A DNA stretch of 56,486 bases from Cyanophora paradoxa CCMP329. Taxonomy: Eukaryota; Plantae; Glaucophyta. The stretch is taken from contig QPMI01000315.1 in the NCBI GenBank assembly GCA_004431415.1, forward strand, positions 1-56,486, read 5' to 3'. The notes under the pieces were generated by a model, which was not told the origin of the DNA, searched no databases, and saw only the letters and a list, made by a program, of their open reading frames with translations. Made by a program: the position numbers and the translations under genes. Below are positions 7,262 to 20,226 of this stretch, piece by piece. The stretch's first letter is position 1, and the number at the start of each line of letters is the position of its first letter.

Positions 7262-10200
7262 CTAAACGAGCTTGCGGGTAGAGCTCCTGGGGGCGGCGGA
7301 GCTCGGCGCGGCGGGGGCGGCGGGGCGGGTGGAAGAAGAGCGGCGGGAGGGGGCGGGGCTGCCGAGGAGGCTCTCCCGCCTGCTGGAGCCCCCGAAGGCC
7401 GGCGAGGCGAGGTGCGCGCTGGGGCCCGGGCCGGCGGCCGCCTGGGGCACGAGGCAGAGGCGGGCGAGGAGGGCGGAGAGCATGGCGGCGCCCTCGGCGT
7501 GCTGCACGGCCGCCACCTCGCCCTTGCCCGCCCCCGGCTTCCCCGCCGGCGCCCGCGCCAGCACAAGCGCCCCCGCGTTCTTGGCGCGGAGGGGCGGCCG
7601 GGCAGCCGCGGCAGGTGGGGGCGGGGCGGGGGCGGGCTTGGCGATGGCGGCCTTGCGGTCGAGGGCGGCCTTGTGCTCGAGGAGCTGGAGGCTCTGCTGG
7701 AGCTTCCGGACGGCCTCGGGGCGGGCGGCGACGGCGGCGCGCTGCTCGGGGCCGGCGGCGAGGGCGGAGAGGACGGCGACGGCGCCCTCGAAGATGTTCG
7801 CGCGGTCGCGGTACATGGCGACGTGCTCGGCGAGGATGTCCGGGGCGTCCTCCGTCTGCAGGAGGGCCCCCGCCGTCGCCGGGCGCCGCGCGATGTTCGC
7901 GAGGGCCCCGAGGGCGTAGCCGACGAGCTCGAGGTGCGGGAGGGAGCGGTTGCAGGAGCGGATGAGCCCGAAGATGATCGCCGTGGCCCCCGACTCCGCG
8001 AGCCGCTCGCAGCAGCGCGGCGAGTACCGCGTCGAGATCTCTGCGGTCCGCCTCAGCGATCGTCTCGCCCCGCGCGAGCGGCGCGGGAAGGGGCGGACCG
8101 AGGGCCTTGCAGGCGTCCATGACGACGGCGAGGCGGGAGCTGCGGAAAAGCGCCTCGAGGGCCGCCGCCGTCCGATTCCCGATCCGCCCCGCCTCCGTCG
8201 CCTCCCTCGTCGCGATCTGCGGGGAGGAATGACGCCCGCGCTGCGCCCGCGGGCGCCGGGGCGGCGACGCACGGCGAGGCGCTCGCGGAGCTGCCGCAGC
8301 TTCTGAGCGCCCGCGCGCCGGATCTTGTGGCCACGCCAGTGCGACTGCGCGGCAGAGGGTCATCACGGACGAGGGGAGCGGAGGCGCCGCCCCGCCAGGC
8401 GGACCTGGATGCAGAGGATGGCCTGGATGCGGCGGCGCGCGCAGAGGCCAGCAAGCCCCGAGCGCGCGAACGCCGTGAGGACACCCGCCGCCGCCTTCCG
8501 CCTCGCGACCCGCGCCCGCGCCAAGGGCTGGAGCGACGGATTAGGGGTCGAGAGAGGTTCGCTCAGAGCTGCCGTGCACACCTGCAGGGCGCAGACGGCC
8601 GAGCGAAGGCGCAAGAAGCGCAGGCGGTCCAGCCTGACCCGGAACCAGCGCTGGTGACGGCGTCAGAATGCGGGAAAGGCGAAGAAAGAACAAGGAGGAA
8701 CCTGAATGACGACAGCGGCAGAGCCGCAGCGCTCGACGCGCCGGCGGGAGAGCCAGACGCGTACGCAGCGCTGGAGCAGGAGAGCGGCGCGGTACTCCCG
8801 AATGTTGGCCCGGATATGCTGGAAGAACTTCCGTTGCAGCAGCCCACGGACGAGCGACTGCAGGAGTGTGGCCGCCGCCTGACGGACATTGAACCCACGA
8901 ACGAGCTCCGCGGCAAAAGCCCGGCGAGCCACGAAGCCCCGCCAGCTCGCCGCGATCGCCGTCGCCGCCGCGCGCGCCTGGCGGAACGACCGGCGGCCAC
9001 GAAGCCCCGCCAGCTCGCCGCGATCGCCGTCGCCGCCGCGCGCGCCTGGCCGAACGACCGGCGGCCACGAAGCCCCGCCAGCTCGCCGCGATCGCCGTCG
9101 CCGCCGCGCGCGCCTGGCCGAACGACCGGCGGGCCACGAAGCCCCGCCAGCTCGCCGCGATCGCCGTCGCCGCCGCGCGCGCCTGGCGGAACGACCGGCG
9201 GGCCACGAAGCCCCGCCAGCTCGCCGCGATCGCCGTCGCCGCCGCGCGCGCCTGGCCGAACGACCGGCGGGCCACGAAGCCCGCCAGCTCGCCGCGATCG
9301 CCGTCGCCGCCGCGCGCGCCTGGCCGAACGACCGGCGGGCCACGAAGCCCGCCAGCTCGCCGCGATCGCCGTCGCCGCCGCGCGCGCCTGGCCGAACGAC
9401 CGGCGGGCCACGAAGCCCCGCCAGCTCGCCGCGATCGCCGTCGCCGCCGCGCGCGCCTGGCGGAACGTCCGGCGGGCCACGAAGCCCCGCCAGCTCGCCG
9501 CGATCGCCGTCGCCGCCGCGCGCGCCTGGCCGAACGACCGGCGGGCCACGAAGCCCGCCAGCTCGCCGCGATCGCCGTCGCGCCGCGCGCGCCTGGCCGA
9601 ACGACCGCGGCCACGAAGCCCGCCAGCTCGCCGCGATCGCCGTCGCGCCGCGCGCGCCTGGCCGAACGACCGGCGGCCACGAAGCCCCGCCAGCTCGCCG
9701 CGATCGCCGTCGCCGCCGCGCGCGCCTGGCGAACGACCGGCGGGCACGAAGCCCCGCCAGCTCGCCGCGATCGCCGTCGCCGCCGCGCGCGCCTGGCGAA
9801 CGACCGGCGGCCACGAGCCCGCAGCTCGCCGCGATCGCCGTCGCCGCGCGCGCGCCTGGCCGAACGACCGGCGGCCACGAAGCCCCGCCAGCTCGCCGCG
9901 ATCGCCGTCGCCGCCGCGCGCGCCTGGCGAACGACCGGCGGGCCACGAAGCCCCGCCAGCTCGCCGCGATCGCCGTCGCCGCCGCGCGCGCCTGGCGAAC
10001 GACCGGCGGGCACGAAGCCCCGCCAGCTCGCCGCGATCGCCGTCGCCGCCGCGCGCCTGGCCGAACGACCGCGGCCACGAAGCCCGCCAGCTCGCCGCGA
10101 TCGCCGTCGCGCCGCGCGCGCCTGGCCGAACGGCGGGCCACGAAGCCCCGCCAGCTCGCCGCGATCGCCGTCGCCGCCGCGCGCGCCTGGCCGAACGACC

Positions 10201-13200
10201 GGCGGGCCACGAAGCCCGCCAGCTCGCCGCGATCGCCGTCGCCGCCGCGCGCGCCTGGCCGAACGACCGCGGCCACGAAGCCCGCCAGCTCGCCGCGATC
10301 GCCGTCGCCGCGCGCGGCCTGGCCGAACGACCGGCGGGCCACGAAGCCCGCCAGCTCGCCGCGATCGCCGTCGCCGCGCGCGCGCCTGGCGAACGCCGGC
10401 GGGCCACGAAGCCCCGCCAGCTCGCCGCGATCGCCGTCGCCGCCGCGCGCGCCTGGCGAACGACCGGCGGGCCACGAAGCCCCGCCAGCTCGCCGCGATC
10501 GCCGTCGCCGCGCGCGCGCCTGGCCGAACGACCGCGGCCACGAAGCCCCGCCAGCTCGCCGCGATCGCCGTCGCCGCCGCGCGCGCCTGGCCGAACGACC
10601 GGCGGGCACGAAGCCCCGCCAGCTCGCCGCGATCGCCGTCGCCGCCGCGCGCGCCTGGCCGAACGACCGCGGCCACGAAGCCCGCCAGCTCGCCGCGATC
10701 GCAGTCGCGCGCGCGCCTGGCCGAACGACCGGCGGCCGCGAAGCCCGCCAGCTCGCCGCGATCGCCGTCGCCACGCGCGCGCCTGGCCGAACGACCGGCG
10801 GGCCACGAAGCCCCGCCAGCTCGCCGCGATCGCCGTCGCCGCCGCGCGCGCCTGGCCGAACGACCGGCGGGCCACGAAGCCCCGCCAGCTCGCCGCGATC
10901 GCCGTCGCCGCCGCGCGCGCCTGGCCGAACGACCGGCGGGCCACGAAGCCCCGCCAGCTCGCCGCGATCGCCGTCGCCGCCGCGCGCCTGGCCGAACGAC
11001 CGGCGGGCACGAAGCCCCGCCAGCTCGCCGCGATCGCCGTCGCCGCCGCGCGCGCCTGGCGAACGACCGCGGGCCACGAAGCCCGCCAGCTCGCCGCGAT
11101 CGCCGTCGCCGCGCGCGCGCCTGGCCGAACGACGGCGGCACGAGCCCGCCAGCTCCGCGATGCGCGCCGCGCGCGCCTGCGAACGACGCGGCACAGCCCG
11201 CAGCTCGCCGTCGCCGCCGCGCGCGCCTGGCCGAACGACCGCGGGCCACGAAGCCCCGCCAGCTCGCCGCGATCGCCGTCGCCGCCGCGCGCGCCTGGCC
11301 GAACGACCGCGGGCCACGAAGCCCGCCAGCTCGCCGCGATCGCCGTCGCCGCGCGCGCGCCTGGCGAACGACCGGCGGGCCACGAGCCCCGCCAGCTCGC
11401 CGCGATCGCCGTCGCCGCCGCGCGCGCCTGGCCGAACGACCGGCGGGCCACGAAGCCCCGCCAGCTCGCCGCGATCGCCGTCGCCGCCGCGCGCGCCTGG
11501 CCGAACGACCGGCGGGCCACGAAGCCCCGCCAGCTCGCCGCGATCGCCGTCGCCGCCGCGCGCGCCTGGCCGAACGACCGGCGGGCCACGAAGCCCGCCA
11601 GCTCGCCGCGATCGCCGTCGCGCCGCGCGCGCCTGGCCGAACGACCGGCGGGCCACGAAGCCCGCCAGCTCGCCGCGATCGCCGTCGCCGCCGCGCGCGC
11701 CTGGCCGAACGACCGGCGGCCACGAAGCCCCGCCAGCTCGCCGCGATCGCCGTCGCCGCCGCGCGCGCCTGGCCGAACGACCGGCGGGCCACGAAGCCCC
11801 GCCAGCTCGCCGCGATCGCCGTCGCCGCCGCGCGCGCCTGGCCGAACGACCGGCGGGCCACGAAGCCCCGCCAGCTCGCCGCGATCGCCGTCGCCGCCGC
11901 GCGCGCCTGGCCGAACGACCGGCGGCCACGAAGCCCGCCAGCTCGCCGCGATCGCCGTCGCCGCCGCGCGCGCCTGGCCGAACGACCGGCGGGCCACGAA
12001 GCCCCGCCAGCTCGCCGCGATCGCCGTCGCCGCCGCGCGCGCCTGCCGAACGACCGGCGGGCCACGAAGCCCCGCCAGCTCGCCGCGATCGCCGTCGCCG
12101 CCGCGCGCGCCTGGCCGAACGACCGGCGCGCAAGGAAGCGGCGCATGCAGGCCTGCAGCTCCACAATGGCCGTGCGGTTTCGGAGGGCAGCCTTGAGCTC
12201 CGCGGAGACGCGCGCGGCCAGCACGTCGAGCTCGTGCTTCCGCACGTGTCTTGAACGCAGGCTCTGGATTTCTCGGCGCGTCCGTGTCGACCTCCAGCAA
12301 CGCTGCGGGCCCGAGTCATTCTCACCTCGCCCCGGGTAGAGGGCAAGGGTCACCTGAATCGACGACGCGGCGACGCGAGCGCGGGCGAAGGCGCGCCGGG
12401 CGACGGAGCCCCGCCAGGAGGCCTGGATCTGGGTTCGGCGTGAGTGGCGCCTAGGCGGCCGCGAGGGAAGGGGGCGGGTCAAGGGTCCGGCCGAGCCGCT
12501 GGAAACCGCGGCGCGTGGGGAGGGGGGCAACCCCCTCCCTGCCTGGCCGGACCTATCCGAGCAAATTTTTTTTTTGGAAGGGGGCGGGTCACCTTCGAGG
12601 CCTGCAGGCCGCGCCACTCGAGGCTGGCGGCCTTCACCGAGCGCAGCAGGGCAGCGCGCTGGGCCCGCCGGAGGGCCCAGGCCCGGATGCGCGCCGTCGC
12701 TGCCGTGCGCGCCGCGGCGAGGGCGGCCGCGCGCGCGGCTGCCGCCCGGCGCTCGGCCTCGCGGCGGGCGGCGCGCTCGAGGACGTCCCGCCAGGCGCGC
12801 TGGATGCGCGTCGCCGCCCGCCGCCGCCGCAGCTCCCGCGCCGCCTCGGGCGTCGGGGGTGGGCCCCGCGGCCGCCGCCGCTTCCACAGGCGCTGGATGG
12901 CGAGGGCAGCCTGCCAAACAGTGAGCGGAGGGCGGGGGCGCGAGGAGGGAGGAGCGGCAGGCGGCGCACGGAGCACTCGGTGGAGAGGTCGAGGAGGCGG
13001 CGGGCGAGGTAGGCGACGAACATGACGACGCAGCGCTCGTCGGGCACCGCCGGCCGCACTAGGTCCTCCGCCCGCACTGCCCCTCCGTCAGGCGCGGGCG
13101 CCGGGGCCGGGGCGGACAAGGGGCCGGGGCTCGCACCGAGCGGGGGCACGCCGCCGATGGAGCGGGCGAGGGAGAGGACGAGGCGGGCGTTGTGGCGCTC

Positions 13201-15825
13201 GGCCTCGAGGGCGGCGCGGGCGCGCTCGGAGAGGCCGCCGCGCCCCGGGCTGTAGCTCTGCATCCAGCGGCCCTCGGCGAGGCCCTCCTCGTCGCTCCCC
13301 TCATCGGCCTCCTCGTCGCCGGGCCGCGGAGCGCCCTTGACGCAGGCGAGGGGCAGCGCGGCCGGCAGGTAGTGGTGCGCGATGGCGCAGAGGGCCCGCC
13401 CGGAGCCGAGCGAGGTCGTCCAGTTGCGGACGCGCACGCCGTGGAGGGCGGCCACGGCGCGCGCCCACTCAAAGAGCGCCGCCTGCACCGCCTCGGGGCC
13501 CTCCCCCTCGCCCTCCGCCCCACCGTCGATCCCCAGCACGCTGCACTCCTCCTGCGCGGCCGCCGCCTCCCCCTCGGGCGCCTCGGCCGCCGCCGCCCAC
13601 GCCCGCTCGCGCGCCGCTGCCGCCTCCGAGCGCAGGCGGGCGACATCGGCGAGGGAGGGCAGGCAGCGCTGCGGGGCGCGTCAGGCGTCAGCGGCGGGCG
13701 GGGCGCGGGTGCCGAGGAGGGCGCACGGAGCGGAAGAGGGCCCAGAGGAGGGCGAGGGTGCGCTCGCGGTGGCCGTCGGCGACGTCCTCGGGCGGGCGGC
13801 GGCGCGCACGCCGGCGGCCTGGACGGCGAGGGCGACGTTGTGGAGGCGGCGGCTGCGCTCCTCCGCGGGGGTGCGGAGCCTGGCGAGGAGGCCGAGGTCG
13901 GCGGCGGGGCTGAGCGCCTGCACGAGCCGCGCGAGGCGGACGCCGTCGCGCAGCGCCCCGGCGAGGCCGCTCGGCCCCGCCACGCGCCAGTCGAACTCGT
14001 CCAGCGGCGCCTGCTCATGCTCGGCGGCGGCGCCCCAGCGGCGCAGGTGCCGCGCCAGGTCCCCCTCGCCCCGCAGCACTGCCCGCCCCAGGGCGCGCAG
14101 CATCTCGGTGGAGGACTTGACGGGCGCCTCCTTGCAGAAGAGGCACTCCTCCAGCAGCCCCGCCCGCTTCGCGCGGTCCAGCAGCAGCACCGTGCGCAGC
14201 AGGCGCCGCACGGCGTCGGGGCCCGGGGTGGCGGGGGCGAGGGGCCCCTCCTCGAGGAAGCGGGCGAGGGGGGCGAGGGGGTCGGCCCCCGCGGGGACGG
14301 GGATGACGAGGCCGTGGACGACCTCGAGGCCGAGGCGGAGCCAGCGGGGCGCGTACGAGAAGAGGAGCGAGAGGAGGCCCTCCCGCACCCCGACGTCCGA
14401 CCGCCAGTCCGTGTCCCCCCGCACCGCGATCTGCCCCGACTCCACCAGCTGGCCCCGGCCCCCGGCCCCGTCAGGCAGGCCGGGAGGGCCGCGCGGGCAG
14501 GCGGAAGGGGGCGGGCGGGCGCACGCGGTCGACGTTGGCGAGGACCGGGGCGAGCTCGTCGCCCTTGTACAGCGCGTGCGCCCGCTGCCGCAGCCGCGCC
14601 TCGGCGAGCCGCGTCGAGTAGTCCCGCAGCGCCGCCTGCCCCGCGTTGCCGGCCTCGGCGCCGCCGGCGGTGGCGGGGGCGGGCGGGCAGAGGAGGAAGT
14701 TGATCCACTCGGTGAAGGCGCGCTCCTGCTTCTCGGGGCCCGACTCGTCGTCGAAGACGTCCCGGTACGGCCCCTGCCGCCGCACCGCCGTCGCCGACCC
14801 CGCCCCCGCGCCCCGCGGCGTGGCCGGCCCGCCCCGCGGCGTGGCCGGCCCGCCCCGCGGTGTGGCCGGCCCGCCCCGCGGTGTGGTCGGCGCGCTCGTG
14901 CCGGCCGCGAGCCTGGGCGAGGCCAGGGGCGCCTGCCGCGGGGTCGCCGGCCCGGCCGCCTTCGGGGGCGCGGGAAGCGCCAGAGGCGGAATGCGCGGGG
15001 CCGAGTCTGCGGCGGGGCTCGGGCAGAGAAGCCGGGTGGGGCGGGCGGGCGCACCGCGGGTGGGCGGAGCGCGGGGCTTCAGGGGCTCCCGCTCCGCCGG
15101 CTTGCGCGGCGCCGGCGAGGGCGCCGGGGCCTGCCGGGGAGTCGGCGTGCCGCAAAACGCGTTCAAAATGCTCTGCTTGAGCACCTTCTTGGCTGCGCCG
15201 GCGACCGGCGGCTTGGCGGCCGCCGCCGGCGCGGGAGGCTTGGCGGCCGATCCCGCGGGGGGCTTCTTCGCCTGCGGGGCGGGGTCAGGCCGCAGGAGCA
15301 AAGCGGGCGGAAAGGGCGCGCCGCCGCCTCGACGCCGACGCCGAGGAAGACGACCTGGAGGCGGTGGCGGCCGCCGAGCTTCAGCAGCGCCGTCTCCCGC
15401 ACGCCGCCCGCCGCCGCCGGCGCCCACGAGACCGACAGCGGCATCGTCGACAGCGGCGGCACGCTCGCCTCGTCGCGGTCCACTGAGAAGCCCTTCGCGT
15501 ACGGGAACTTCTCGACCAGCACCTCGGCGCTGACCAGGCCGTCGTTCTGCAGCTGCAGCTCCAGGAACTTCCGCTGCCCGCGCCTCACCTCCCCAAAGTC
15601 TAGCATCGCCGGCTTTGAGAACGCCGACAGCTGGAGCACCGGCCCAGCCTCCGCGGCTGCCGGCGGTGCGGATGCCAGCGCATTCTTTTCTGGCTCGGCG
15701 AACGCGCCGGCCCCAAGGCCGCGCGCGGCTAGCACCGGCAAGTTCTCCTTATCTGGATGCGCGCACGCGTTAGCAGGGATCCGCCGGCGTCCGCGTGAGA
15801 GCGCATGCTCGCACGAACCTGTCAT
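7262..15825 (-). CDS. ASPM: Abnormal spindle / ASPM homologue (ASH, two CH domains, IQ array, ARM-like C-terminus)
   Basis: N-terminal DKENL (KEN box). ASH domain LDFGEVRRGQRKFLELQLQN...LSVSWAP. Conserved blocks KQERAFTEWINFLLCP, DVGVREGLLSLLFSYAPRWLRLGLEVVHG, GEGDLARHL, HEQAPLDEFDW, LRDGVRLARL. CH2: VRNWTTSLGSGRALCAIAHHYLP...PDERCVVMFVAYL. IQ repeats, then C-terminal CCERL...LIRSCNRSLPH. Confidence 0.93.
8925..12130 (-). repeat. Coding tandem array of a 69-bp unit (~47 copies) encoding the IQ-like 23-mer RRSFGQARAAATAIAASWRGFVA
   Basis: Unit GCCACGAAGCCCCGCCAGCTCGCCGCGATCGCCGTCGCCGCCGCGCGCGCCTGGCCGAACGACCGGCGG repeated head-to-tail with no spacers. Copy number is estimated as span/69. Many 1-nt indels. 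Confidence 0.95.
14811..14885 (-). repeat. 21-bp coding tandem repeat (TPRGGPA x ~3.5) in the ASPM N-terminal region
   Basis: CCCCGCGG(C/T)GTGGCCGGCCCG repeated; translates to TTPRGGPATPRGGPATPRGGPATPRG, a run of proline-directed TP sites. Confidence 0.8.
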
Positions 15826-15989
15826 GCCGAGCTAGGGCCCCGCGGGCCAGATTTGAAGCCGGGAGCGGCCTCCAAGCTAGCTGCGATGGTCCCCTACCTC
15901 GTCGACGCGCTCGCTGGGCTGCGATATGGGTGTTTCGCTCTGACCGTTTTCTTTTCGTTGCAACCTGGCCGGGGGTACGAGACGTTTCG
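15826..15989. promoter_or_regulatory. Short bidirectional promoter between ASPM and the Hcp-like gene, with CHR-like and MSA-like motifs
   Basis: Divergent ATGs are 164 bp apart. TTTGAA at 15852-15857; TGACCGTT at 15941-15948 (AACGGTCA on the ASPM strand). Confidence 0.5.
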
Positions 15990-17359
15990 ATGCTTCACCT
16001 TCGTAGGGCGGCCGCGGCCTCCCTCGCCAACGCGGGGCGCGTGCACACATTGCGCGCAACTCCGGCGGCTCTTACGCAGCCCGTCCGCTGCTTCCAACTC
16101 GGCGGCCCTTTCCGTTTCATTTCTGTCCCCGCGCTCCTGGCGAGCTTCGCCAACGTTGTGAAGGGTCCAGTGCGCGCCTTCCGCGGCCGTTCGCTCGGCG
16201 CGTCCGCGCTCGACAACCGCTTGATCAATCAACGCGCACCCCGTTGATTTCAGTTCGTCGACTGGGTGAAGGATATTGTCAAGACGACGCCCAAGTTCGT
16301 GCTGGGCCACGAATTCCACGTGCGCCTCCCTTGGAATGCCTCTCGCCAATAGCACTGACGCGCGTGCAGGTCCGCATCCTCGGCTCGAAGCAAGGGCAGT
16401 TCTCGGGCGGTGCGCTTAGAGATGCACGCTGTCTCTGGTCGCGCTTTCTGCTAGCTCGAGCGCTACGCCATCGCTGCTAGCGTTACGACGAGCTCGCCGC
16501 GCGCGCGCGACCAAGCGGCTCACCGACGCCCGCGCGCTGCACATGTGCCCCCGCCGCGCGCAGAGATCACCCCGCCCCTCGGCCACGAGGTGCCGCGGCG
16601 CCCGCACGCAGCCGGCCTCGAGCTCGCTCGTATCGTTTTGATCGCGGGCTCGGCCGCAGGGCGTGATGGGGGGCATCGCATTCAAGTGCGACGTGAATTG
16701 CAATTCGGCGGGCGGCGCGGAGGGCGAGAGCGCCGGCGCCGGCGCGGCTTCGGGCCCTGGGACGCCGCGGTACAAGCCGATCAGCTTTGTGAAGGAGTGT
16801 GGGGCGGCGACGCCGCAGCTGCTGGCGGCGCTGGAGACGCAGGAGCCCCTCGAGCTCGTCACCGCGCGCCGCGCCCCGCCCCACGCCCCCCCGCCGGCCC
16901 GCTGGGGCGACGGGGGGGCGGGCAGATCGACTTCCTGCGTGTGGGGCTGGAGGGCCTCTCGCGGGGCCGCACGGAGGAGGTCTACCTCACCATGGAGCTC
17001 CGCGCCGCCCGCCTCGTCGCCATCCGCCAGGCCCCCGCCCCGCCCCGCCCCGCCCCTCCCGGCCCCTCCCACCCCGCCCTCAGTTCGTCGACAAGGACGA
17101 CGGGGCCAAGGACCGGCGGCACCACATGGCGCGCCGCGCCGCGCCTCGCGGCCCGGGCGGGGCTGAGACGGGGCCTCGCGCAGGAGGAGGTCGCCCTCGT
17201 GGCGCGCTCCGTGCGCCTCGTCAACCACCAGACCGGCACCGAGTTCACCGCCGAGGCCCGCGCCCCCCGCCCCGCGCCGCCCCGCCCCGCCCCGCCCCAC
17301 CTCCGCGCCCTGCCGACGCCCACCAGGTGCCCCCCGAGCGCTGGCAGACCGGCTCGTAG
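15990..17359 (+). CDS. hcp: Hcp/TssD (type VI secretion tube protein) homologue, 9 exons, ~256 aa, with an N-terminal mitochondrial-type presequence
   Basis: Exons 15990-16169, 16254-16319, 16370-16409, 16564-16589, 16660-16863, 16926-17030, 17084-17128, 17184-17255 and 17327-17359 splice in frame. Product includes GHEFHVRILGSKQGQFSGE...GHEGVMGGIAFKCDV...RYKPISFVKECGAATPQLLAALETQEPLELVTIDFLR...EEVYLTMELRAARLVAIRQF...HMEEVALVARSVRLVNHQTGTEF, collinear with bacterial Hcp motifs. Confidence 0.88.
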
Positions 17360-17400
17360 CGCCTCGATTCCCCGTAGCGTGTAAATATGAGGGGAGGAGG

Positions 17401-20226
17401 CTACTCGTCGTCGGCCGGCTCGGCGGGGGCGGGGCGGCCGCTGCGCCAGGCCTCGTGCGCGGCGCGGTGCCGCTCGAGGGCCCGCTCTGCCTTGCGCCGC
17501 GCGTTCTTCGAGAGCGGCGCCCCGCCCCGTCGTGCGTCGGGAGGCCCTGCGCCGGGTCGCTCCCCGAGGGCGCCGCGCGCCTCGGGCCGGTGTGCCGCAC
17601 CCGCTCGTCGAAGGCGCTGTACTCCCCCGCCTTGAGCTCGGCGAAGAAGCGCTCGGGGGCACCGAGGCGCGCGGGCGCAGGGCGGGCCGGCTGCGGCTTG
17701 GCGGCGGGGGCGGCGGGCTGGGCGGGGCCTCCGGCTCGCAGAAGGCGACGCGGAAGGGGCCCTCCTGGCCGGCGGTGTCCTGCGGGGCGCTGAGCGGGCG
17801 GCGGGGTGCGTGCGGCGGGGTGCGGGGCGGGGGCGGGCCTCGAGGCGGACGCCGAGGGCGGGAGCTCCTTCCCCCGCACCCGGTCGCACGCCGCCAGCAG
17901 CGCCCCCTTCGCCGCCCCGCCCGCCACGCCCCGCGCCGCCTCCCGCACCTGCCGGCCGCCCGTCAGAAGCCGAGCGGGTAAGAGGACGGGAGGGGGAGGG
18001 GGGCGGGCCTCGCTGCGGAAGCGCGCGAGCACGCGGACGACCTCCTCGAAGGCTGCTGCCCCGCTCGAGCCGCGAGGCGGAGGGGCGGGGGCGGGGCGGG
18101 GCGGGGGCGCACGCGGGGGCGGCCGGCGTCGGAGGCGGCGCGGGCCTCGCCGAGGGCCTCCTCGTCGAGGCCGAGGCAGGCGAGGGTCCCCGCACGTGCG
18201 CCCCGCCCCCGCCACCGCCTCCACCACCGCCCTGCGCCAAGGCTCGGCCGGGGCGGGGGCGGGGGGGCGGGGAAGCGCACTCGTTGCGGGCGGAGCGCTC
18301 GCCCCAGTAGGCGTTGGCGCAGGCGACGAGGTCGAGAGGGACTGCGCCGAGGGGCGTCGGGGGGGCAGGCGCCCCGGGCCGCGGGAGGGACCTTCAGGGC
18401 GCGCGGCGTGTCGAAGCTGTCGGCGAAGGCCGCCGCCACCGCCGCCTCCGACGCCCGCACCCTGCCCCCCGCCTCAGCGCCCCGCGCACCCCGGCGGGAG
18501 GGCGGGCGGGGCGCGCCGCTCGCGGAGCTGCCACTCGGCGGGGCCCCACTTGCGGGGCGGGGCGGGGGCCGGGGTGCAGGCGGGGGCGGGGGCGGGGCGG
18601 CAGCGGGCGAGGAAGTCGGCGAAGCGGCGGAGGACGGCGCGGGCGTCGCGGAGGCGGTCGCAGCCGGCAGGGGCGGGGCCCTCGCCCTCGCCGGCGTCGA
18701 ACTCGACGTTGGAGGACCAGGGGTGCGCGGCGCAGAAGGCCCGAAACTCCCCCGGGGTACACCCCCCGAGGAGCTCCCCGACCGTCACGAAGTTCTTCAG
18801 CGACTTCGACATCTTCCGGCCCCGGATGTGCAGGTGCCCTGCCCCCCCCGCCCCCTCAGCTGCCGGGGGCCCCGAGGCGCGAGGAGCCGCGGGACCGCAC
18901 CCGTGTGCCAGAAGTGGGAGCACCAGCGATCGCCAGGTACCCCGGCGTGCGCCCGGCACTGCCGTCCGCGTGAGGGGGAGGGAGGGGGAGGGGGGTAAGC
19001 TCGCACCTGGGCGATCTCGTTCTCGTGGTGGGGGAACTTGAGGTCGATACCCCCCGAGTGCACGTCCAGCCGGCCGCCGAAGAACGCGCTAGGAGGGGTA
19101 CGTGTGGGCCGAGGGGGAGGAGAGAGGCGGGAGGGGTGGGGCGGACTGGGTCATGGCGGAGCACTCGACGTGCCAGCCGGGGCGGCCTGGGCCCCAGGGG
19201 GAGGGCCAGGAGGGGCCGGGCGCGCCCGCCGCCGCCCCCTTCCACAGCGCAAAGTCCCGAGGGTGCCGCTTCCCTGCGCCGCGAGAGGGGGCACGGGAGA
19301 GGAGCGCGGGGCGGATGGCCGCACCCGGGGCGGGGGCCTCCCCGTCCTCGGCGTCCCCCGGCTCGCAGGCGGCCCGCGAGGGGTCGAGGACGCCGTACCC
19401 GTAGGCGGGGGCGTAGGCGACGCTGTCGAAGTAGACGCTGCCGTCCGGGGCGGGGTACGCGAGCCCGTTCTCGACGATCCGGCGCACGTAGGCCACGATC
19501 TCCTCGACGTGGTCCGTCACGCGCGCCACCGCCGTGGGGGGCAGCACCTGCGCGCCCCGCCCCGGCGCGTCGGCCGGCGCCGGGCCCTCGGGAGCCGAGC
19601 GGGGGGCCGAGGGGCGCGCACGCCGAGGCGGGCCATGTCGCGGAAGAACTCGGCCTCGTAGCGCGCGGAGAGTTCCTGCCACGGCACGCCAGCGTCGCCC
19701 GCCCGCCTGATGATCTGCCCAGCCGGCGCTCGGCGGGGCGGGGCGGGGCGGCAGCTGCGGGGGCGTGGTGGGCGGGGCGGGCCTTGTCGTCGACGTCGGT
19801 GACTCCCATCAGGTAGAAGACGTCGTAGCGGAAGTACTGGGTGAGGATCCGCCGCATGATGTCCTGCGACACGTACGTCCTGCGCCCGGGCCCCGCGCCG
19901 CTCGGCCGCGCTGGGCCGCGGAGCGAGCCCGCGCGAGCGCACCGCGCGTGCCCCAGGTGCGCCGCGTCGTACACGGTGGGCCCGCACGAGTACCTGCGTG
20001 CCTGCTCGCCGACTCGCAGACGCGTCGCGCGGCCGGCGCACCACGTCAACGGCCGGCCGCTCGGCGGCTCCAACGGGTCGAGCGCGTGAGTGAGGCTGTT
20101 CAGCACGGAGACAGTGGAGCGCGCCGGTGAGAGTCCAGCCGCCGCCGTCGAGTGCGCGGGGCGGAGCGCGCGCGGTACTGTCTTCGCCGCCGACAGCGCG
20201 GCCACGCCGCCTAACCGCGCCGGCAT
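17401..20226 (-). CDS. CARS2: Cysteinyl-tRNA synthetase, organellar (CARS2-like), multi-exon
   Basis: W|[17 protein letters not shown] (HIGH-like), [75 protein letters not shown] (KMSKS). Arg/Ala/Ser-rich N-terminal extension. Confidence 0.95.

Follow-up and report, generated by a model that had tools for sequence, protein, structure and literature searches.

The window analysed in this study comprises 56,486 nucleotides (nt) of the freshwater glaucophyte alga Cyanophora paradoxa CCMP329 (assembly GCA_004431415.1, contig QPMI01000315.1, positions 1 to 56,486 of the forward strand) and is approximately 75% G+C throughout. At positions 15990-17359 on the plus strand we found a gene of nine in-frame exons, totalling 771 nt and encoding 256 amino acids (aa) followed by a TAG stop codon, that is almost certainly a real, spliced nuclear gene derived from the bacterial protein Hcp/TssD. 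Hcp is the tube protein of a bacterial weapon made up of many proteins, termed type VI secretion system (T6SS). The gene had been proposed in an earlier reading made from the letters of the window (hereafter the sequence-only reading), which described nine exons separated by four GT-AG and four GC-AG introns and a product of about 256 aa; we recovered the same structure at the same positions, and translation of 15700-17700 in three frames returned all of the peptides quoted in that reading, split by short stretches with splice-site ends.

A public counterpart of the gene was retrieved with HMMER, using only exon 5 as query against 1.84 billion representative proteins; the search returned a 322-aa protein (P0001; EukProt tig00001335_g8209.t1) at 99% identity (E 1.4e-35) for which no Pfam domain is recorded. 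This public model shares exons 1-6 with the nine-exon model except at the donor of intron 5, where it uses a GT at 16858, 6 nt upstream of the GC donor at 16864, such that exon 5 ends at 16857 in the public model and at 16863 in the nine-exon model. The GC donor adds a Val-Thr pair, which supplies the Val found at that column in 90% of bacterial Hcps and closes the sole 2-residue gap of that region in the Hcp alignment; in addition, intron 5 begins with the same 12 nt as intron 7, the splicing of which is confirmed below, and the two best tblastn alignments with bacterial Hcps continue to 16863. For these reasons we favour the GC donor at 16864 over the GT at 16858. Downstream, the public model reads through introns 6, 7 and 8 in a single frame (17031-17382) to a stop at 17382, which places Pro-rich inserts in the protein.

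Introns 1-4 are 64-74% G+C and the donor hexamer GTGCGC is common to the first three of them, and introns 5-8, all of the GC-AG class, are 53-71 nt in length and 89-94% G+C. The proposed reading frames exhibit a host-like G+C content of 0.89 at third codon positions (GC3) versus 0.48 at second positions (GC2), and in exon 7 GC3 reaches 1.00 in the frame of the nine-exon model versus 0.79 in the frame of the public model. An in-frame stop codon at 16245-16247 lies just 5′ of exon 2, which itself contains no Met; exon 1 is thus obligatory, its ATG being the sole start able to feed exon 2. Introns 1-6 are proposed from homology across their junctions, from recurring donor sequences and from the public model, and are likely on those grounds.

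Reads from four sequencing runs (X1, X2, X5 and X13) were mapped onto 15500-17900. A single 170 nt contig from X13 (depth 2.7, no mismatch) carries the pieces 17072-17127, 17183-17253 and 17325-17363 contiguously. Within a joint ambiguity of 2 nt, which allows GC..AG ends for intron 7 and takes the form of an AG/AG ambiguity at intron 8, this contig removes exactly introns 7 and 8 (17129-17183 and 17256-17326). X13 had been labelled as RNA only by guess; its splice joints suggest that it is cDNA. Removal of introns 7 and 8 in the spliced contig shows that the 3′ end of the public model is wrong, and the nine-exon model fits the evidence better there. Read depth in X1, X2 and X5 on 16634-17038 was not taken as expression of the gene, the contigs concerned mostly continuing into unlike sequence (share 0.91-0.98).

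From about residue 78 on, the product is, as judged from profile alignment and a predicted structure, a complete and very divergent Hcp/TssD domain. Profile scores were taken on single exons or on P0001, exons 2, 6 and 8 being singly too short to score. Exon 5 alone matched Pfam T6SS_HCP (PF05638) at E 0.0016 and TIGR03344 at E 0.0045, and P0001 matched the same two profiles at E 1.7e-4 (22.3 bits) and E 1.1e-6 (28.7 bits), respectively. We also collected 97 bacterial Hcps and aligned the 54 of normal length; hhalign of P0001 against the resulting profile gave a probability of 98.9% and E 1.5e-17 over 119 columns (residues 76-209), in an alignment that starts at the very first Hcp residue and runs unbroken across the E2/E3, E3/E4 and E4/E5 junctions. 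The Hcp motif order that the sequence-only reading had traced from about residue 78 was recovered, with the quoted motifs present, by this alignment and by a fold match at Z of approximately 16. Weak sequence matches to the solved Hcps 3wx6 and 5urw also cross exon junctions, and the GHEG of micro-exon E4 pairs with the GHDG of 3wx6. When 13 bacterial Hcps were searched against the window with tblastn, matches were found only at 16370-17030, colinear over exons 3, 5 and 6. Bacterial Hcps share 27 columns with at least 80% conservation, 19 of which are retained in the algal protein; a conserved Glu (Glu257) is retained in exon 8, and a Trp lies near the C-terminus in exon 9, as in the ..DDW tails of bacterial Hcps. 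Two further candidate matches were set aside as spurious: P0004, an ankyrin-kinase in which an Ank motif resembles GAATPQLLAAL, and P0005, the translation of a tandem repeat that happens to contain PGTPRY as well.

An AlphaFold2 model of P0001, computed with 59 Hcps as the input alignment, has a core with a predicted local distance difference test score (pLDDT) above 90. All of its top Foldseek matches are Hcps (best 3he1, E 8e-10). In structural alignments with VIA-align, the model (residues 78-281) superposed on 6a2v (chain residues 2-166) at Z 15.9, with 151 aligned residues and a root-mean-square deviation of 3.3, and more than 20 Hcp entries were matched at Z >9; on solved bacterial Hcps the predicted algal fold superposes at Z 14-16. 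The strands encoded by exon 8 belong to the superposed fold, the matched range extending to about residues 281-286 of the model. The tubes of extracellular contractile injection systems (eCIS) and myophages (such as PVC, AFP, AlgoCIS and T4 gp19) share the same basic tube fold, but were matched less well (Z 6.7-8.4, compared with 13-16 for T6SS Hcps) and without any match at the sequence level, from which we conclude that the origin of the algal gene is an Hcp of T6SS type and not a phage or eCIS tube. The coordinates of the exons and introns are given in Table 1.

Table 1. Exons and introns of the Hcp gene of C. paradoxa according to the nine-exon model (E, exon).
Feature	Position	Strand	Description
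E1	15990-16169	+	Start codon and 60 aa of leader; also in public model
Intron 1	16170-16253	+	GT-AG, donor GTGCGC; contains in-frame stop; used by public model
E2	16254-16319	+	End of leader (predicted amphipathic helix) and onset of Hcp domain, ..LGHEFH
Intron 2	16320-16369	+	GT-AG; bacterial Hcp N-termini align gaplessly across E2/E3
E3	16370-16409	+	First Hcp strand with G-[ST]-K-Q-G motif (VRILGSKQGQFSG); ends in phase 1
Intron 3	16410-16563	+	GT-AG; split codon gives back conserved Glu after ..FSG
E4	16564-16589	+	26-nt micro-exon, (E)ITPPLGHE
Intron 4	16590-16659	+	GT-AG; used by public model
E5	16660-16863	+	Hcp core: long Gly/Ala-rich loop, then KPISFVKECGAATPQLLAAL strand-helix
Intron 5	16864-16925	+	GC-AG, 94% G+C; first 12 nt as in donor of intron 7
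E6	16926-17030	+	Hcp strands IDFLRV..EEVYLTMELRAARLVAIRQ
Intron 6	17031-17083	+	GC-AG, 74% C; removal presumed
E7	17084-17128	+	15-aa acidic/basic loop (FVDKDDGAKDRRHHM); covered by spliced X13 contig
Intron 7	17129-17183	+	GC-AG; splicing confirmed by X13 contig (55 nt skipped)
E8	17184-17255	+	Last Hcp strands (EEVALVARSVRLVNHQTGTEFTAE); covered by X13 contig
Intron 8	17256-17326	+	GC-AG; splicing confirmed by X13 contig
E9	17327-17359	+	C-terminal 10 aa; stop codon TAG at 17357-17359

The Hcp gene lies between an ASPM-like gene and a gene for a cysteinyl-tRNA synthetase (CysRS), as the sequence-only reading had placed it. Upstream on the minus strand, an ASH domain (E 3e-15) was found within 15163-15825 and one IQ motif further on; spliced contigs of this ASPM-like gene stop at 15934-15957, leaving no more than 33 nt to the start codon of the Hcp gene, in a head-to-head arrangement. 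Downstream, also on the minus strand, lies a gene with a class I CysRS catalytic domain, the transcript contigs of which reach 17351 and, tail to tail, cover the final 9 nt of the coding sequence of Hcp. The Hcp gene is firmly embedded in host DNA, in which the genes are very tightly packed. The downstream gene contains a C-rich GC-AG intron of its own (17779-17837, donor GCCCGC) that is spliced in X1 and X2 and whose C content resembles that of introns 6 and 8 of the Hcp gene. The splicing of such an intron in a neighbour indicates that C-rich GC-AG introns are a trait of the host, and short introns of this kind look like a regular class in the genome. We further noted that the ASPM-like gene spans 8541-12917 and 13059-15825 on the minus strand, although Pfam sees only the ASH domain and the single IQ motif, and that this stretch is 78-82% G+C with long open reading frames (ORFs) on both strands, so that lists of ORFs are uninformative there. 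In the downstream gene, contigs of three runs contain one extra G or C at each of 17519, 17654, 17672, 17683, 17723 and 17859; these are either single-base assembly deletions in G/C runs or strain differences, and call for caution on reading frames.

Bacterial Hcps begin at residue 77 of the algal protein, which therefore carries 76 extra residues at its N-terminus. The sequence-only reading had called the first 60 of these Arg/Ala-rich and free of acidic residues, with an R-C-F site. All three features were confirmed: residues 1-60 are rich in Arg, Ala and Leu and contain six Arg, one Lys and no Asp or Glu; residues 1-33 alone contain five Arg, nine Ala and five Leu, again without an acidic residue, for a net charge of +5; and R-C-F occupies positions 33-35, in which Phe35 is the first aromatic residue, no Phe, Tyr or Trp being present among the first 34. 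An Arg/Ala/Leu-rich, acid-free N-terminus with an R-C-F site fits the composition of a mitochondrial presequence. It is followed by a hydrophobic stretch at 43-57 (mean Kyte-Doolittle hydropathy 1.93 over 15 aa and 1.44 over 19 aa) and by a predicted amphipathic helix at 60-71, and AlphaFold2 places a further helix at residues 2-11 with low confidence. Phe, rarely Tyr, marks the transit peptides of proteins of the Cyanophora plastid, the muroplast, and Phe occurs within the first 10-18 residues in 49/77 and 145/187 of the plastid precursors in two data sets, with about one fifth of muroplast proteins having no N-terminal Phe (PMC4510345). The leader has no Phe within this interval, which makes the plastid stroma a less likely address. 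Taken together, the leader plausibly represents a presequence of mitochondrial type, possibly bipartite, and would equally allow an envelope, lumenal or membrane-anchored fate. As far as can be judged from its residues, the case for targeting to some organelle is evenly balanced, and a mitochondrial destination in particular falls somewhat short of even.

To place the gene among its relatives, we scanned one genome per prokaryotic species and found 27 loci with 27-38% identity, which belong to Gemmatimonadota, Myxococcota, Chloroflexota, Planctomycetota, Acidobacteriota, Nitrospirota, Ignavibacteriota and Cyanobacteriota. The algal protein shares with bacterial T6SS Hcp/TssD (PF05638, TIGR03344), and specifically with a subfamily that starts with MAYEFYVTIEGTKQG.. 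and occurs in Myxococcota, Acidobacteriota, Chloroflexota, Gemmatimonadota, Planctomycetota and Cyanobacteriota, the same domain from first to last strand and the same order of motifs, at 27-37% identity. In contrast to its bacterial counterparts, the algal gene is nuclear, has eight spliceosomal introns and host codon usage, and encodes a 76-aa leader. Homologues in Polyangiaceae and Terriglobia sit among VgrG, TssC, TssF, TssG, ClpV and TssA genes; unlike such hcp genes of T6SS loci, the algal gene adjoins no T6SS genes, and no sheath, VgrG, PAAR or baseplate gene was found within the window.

Some bacterial homologues are likewise orphans. In the Anaerolineae metagenome-assembled genome JAXLWI010000011 and in Cyanobacteria bacterium FACHB-63 no T6SS gene was found in the 8 kb that flank hcp on each side, which indicates that stand-alone Hcps exist. 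The phyla of these two are not known to us for T6SS. The orphans resemble the algal gene in having no local T6SS cluster and may act away from one, but they are of ordinary length (154-162 aa) and retain all invariant residues, and T6SS genes may lie elsewhere in their genomes. The orphan genes occupy 8001-8465 of L004 and 7986-8489 of L013, and their neighbours encode functions in DNA repair, transport and acetyl transfer. We also observed hydrophobic, signal-like N-termini on bacterial Hcps from Myxococcales, Polyangiaceae, Nitrospira and metagenomes (P0075, P0099 and P0101; matches in L014, L016 and L020 near 2799, 8001 and 3788, respectively), which are scattered in the tree and do not form one clade; a signal-like N-terminus is unexpected in a protein that is normally exported via the T6SS itself. 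In a metagenomic protein of 1486 aa (P0006), six T6SS_HCP domains in tandem precede Calx-beta and dockerin domains, an arrangement that looks like an Hcp ring joined covalently and carried by a secreted scaffold.

In a tree of 62 sequences the algal protein nests within the bacterial subfamily, without a supported sister group and with a deviant amino-acid composition. A cyanobacterial sister group was not rejected by the approximately unbiased (AU) test (p 0.475). Given this result and the absence of a supported sister, we claim neither a donor phylum nor an endosymbiotic origin; the phylogeny called for by the sequence-only reading places the gene in a bacterial subfamily. No other eukaryotic homologue was found by HMMER over the 1.84 billion representative proteins, by searches with P0001 or in a metagenome scan: protein homologue searches with P0001, whole or as region 62-212, returned only P0001 itself, and the metagenome scan returned no relative. 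The absence of homologues from the other eukaryotes searched points to a lineage-specific transfer rather than to an ancestral mitochondrial machine. Nucleus-encoded bacterial secretion proteins that act in mitochondria are known from the type II secretion system (T2SS) of jakobids, heteroloboseans and malawimonads, which is encoded by multiple genes, descends from the mitochondrial ancestor and occurs in several deep lineages. By comparison, the algal Hcp is a single gene in one species, for which the tree supports no particular bacterial donor.

The best explanation for the locus as a whole, and one that we regard as reasonably probable, is a functional, low-expressed, domesticated Hcp that stands alone and is probably targeted to an organelle. 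A bacterial gene for a T6SS-type tube protein would have been transferred into the C. paradoxa nucleus, where it took on host codon usage and gained eight host-style introns and the 76-residue N-terminal extension. Its product would still form Hcp-like rings, acting alone without sheath, spike or baseplate. The extension would be a cleavable sequence that directs the protein to an organelle, most likely the mitochondrion; because the hydrophobic segment comes after the basic part, the Hcp domain may be anchored to an inner membrane or sorted across it. There it could serve as a ring-shaped scaffold, or its lumen could take up small proteins in the way that bacterial Hcp binds effectors. A more specific form of this proposal, in which stand-alone hexameric Hcp rings in the mitochondrion or in the envelope space of the peptidoglycan-walled plastid chaperone or conduct small proteins, or trap the effectors of attacking bacteria, is tentative and, we think, rather doubtful.

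A number of results weigh against this explanation, and several of them would also suit the main rival, a neutral relic, that is an old bacterial transfer that is drifting, with a frame that is still open but functionless or on its way to a pseudogene, which we consider unlikely. Expression of the gene is weak and supported by a single contig. No contigs were found on exons 1-4 in the transcriptome runs X1, X2 or X5, although both neighbours are covered and spliced in these runs, which suggests that expression is low or conditional; the low-depth X13 contig retains at least 12 nt of the last part of intron 6. Reads therefore bear out the junctions of the sequence-only reading at introns 7 and 8 and show intron 6 partly retained. 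Intron 6 (53 nt) would nevertheless have to be removed for exon 8 to stay in frame, given that the 55-nt intron 7 is removed. The branch leading to the algal protein is very long (3.27 changes per site, about ten times the median of 0.32), its amino-acid composition is odd, and no orthologue is available to show purifying selection. The proposed check against Pfam and TIGR03344 yielded significant matches with exon 5 and P0001, yet P0001 falls below both curated thresholds, by 1.2 bits for the Pfam gathering score of 23.5 and with 28.7 bits against 58.9 for TIGR03344, as measured on an Hcp domain that carries 36 extra intron-derived residues and is short of 2. Fold match and sequence homology are not independent of each other, since AlphaFold2 was given an Hcp alignment as input, and the hydrophobic moment of the leader is only moderate (0.35-0.47). 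Three residues conserved in 95-100% of bacterial Hcps have been replaced, namely R140 (100%) by Pro, H142 (98%) by Tyr and D128 (95%) by Ser, and K94, K139 and N165 are lost as well. The losses cluster in the long loop, where bacterial D..G..GKRQH.P reads S..G..GTPRY.P in the alga and which is about 10 residues longer, Gly/Ala-rich and modelled with low confidence. Replacement of an invariant Arg and of near-invariant His and Asp residues suggests that the function may have changed or decayed. A relic is harder to reconcile with nine exons that remain in frame behind good splice sites, with the strong host-like codon periodicity noted above, and with the retention of the whole predicted fold and of most conserved positions; the gain of eight introns and a leader also implies long residence, during which an unselected frame of 771 nt would normally break.

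The remaining alternatives concern where the protein goes, what it belongs to and whether it exists. The leader could be bipartite and lead to the peptidoglycan-containing envelope space of the muroplast or the thylakoid lumen, or could direct the protein into the secretory pathway or to the cell surface. At such a destination the Hcp domain might bind components of the T6SSs of attacking bacteria, or mimic them. The signal-peptide-like core of the leader ends in ..ASFA, with small residues at -3 and -1 before Asn55, several bacterial homologues bear signal-like segments, and the fraction of muroplast proteins that do without an N-terminal Phe (PMC4510345) leaves room for such a route; the aromatic-free first 34 residues, the forty-residue basic part that precedes the hydrophobic core, which is atypical of a signal peptide of the endoplasmic reticulum, and the shortness and moderate hydropathy of that core make it quite improbable. 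The sequence-only reading had also suggested a relic or co-opted contractile or secretion system in mitochondria, by analogy with the T2SS of some protists. That the domain is of T6SS type and not of phage or eCIS type, and that the closest bacterial relatives lie in full T6SS loci, would suit such a machine, but the window holds none of its other components, the gene was not found in the other eukaryotes searched, which argues for a lineage-specific transfer of a single gene, and residues conserved in tube-forming Hcps are lost. The suggestion found no support: very probably the algal Hcp is not part of a T6SS-like machine, and a contractile apparatus in the mitochondria is highly improbable. 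An artefact, whether contamination by bacteria or the chance joining of frames in very GC-rich DNA, is effectively refuted. GC-rich DNA does contain long ORFs in all six frames and the assembly shows 1-nt indels against transcript contigs in the next gene, but the profile homology spans five exon junctions, introns are spliced in a contig, spliced eukaryotic genes flank the locus on the same contig, and an independent public model has the same first six exons. The claim that this is a domesticated nuclear gene and not contamination accordingly stands, upheld by the spliced contig, the GC3 of the frames and the spliced eukaryotic neighbours, and the earlier interpretation is sustained in its spliced nuclear Hcp gene and unsupported in its contractile or secretory machine.

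Our literature searches turned up no account of a nucleus-encoded Hcp that has introns and a targeting-type leader, and nothing on Cyanophora in connection with T6SS or Hcp or on the gene identifier tig00001335_g8209.t1. The corrected gene model is useful whether the protein is functional or a relic. Should it prove to be a drifting relic, the locus would provide a clean example of a bacterial gene that was intronised and GC-adapted in a glaucophyte. A stand-alone organellar ring, if formed, would make C. paradoxa the first eukaryote to use an Hcp; and production and import of the protein, if they occur, would mean that a single module of a contractile injection system can be reused alone by a eukaryote, and C. 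paradoxa would offer a tractable case for studying the role of an Hcp ring that has no sheath, spike or baseplate.

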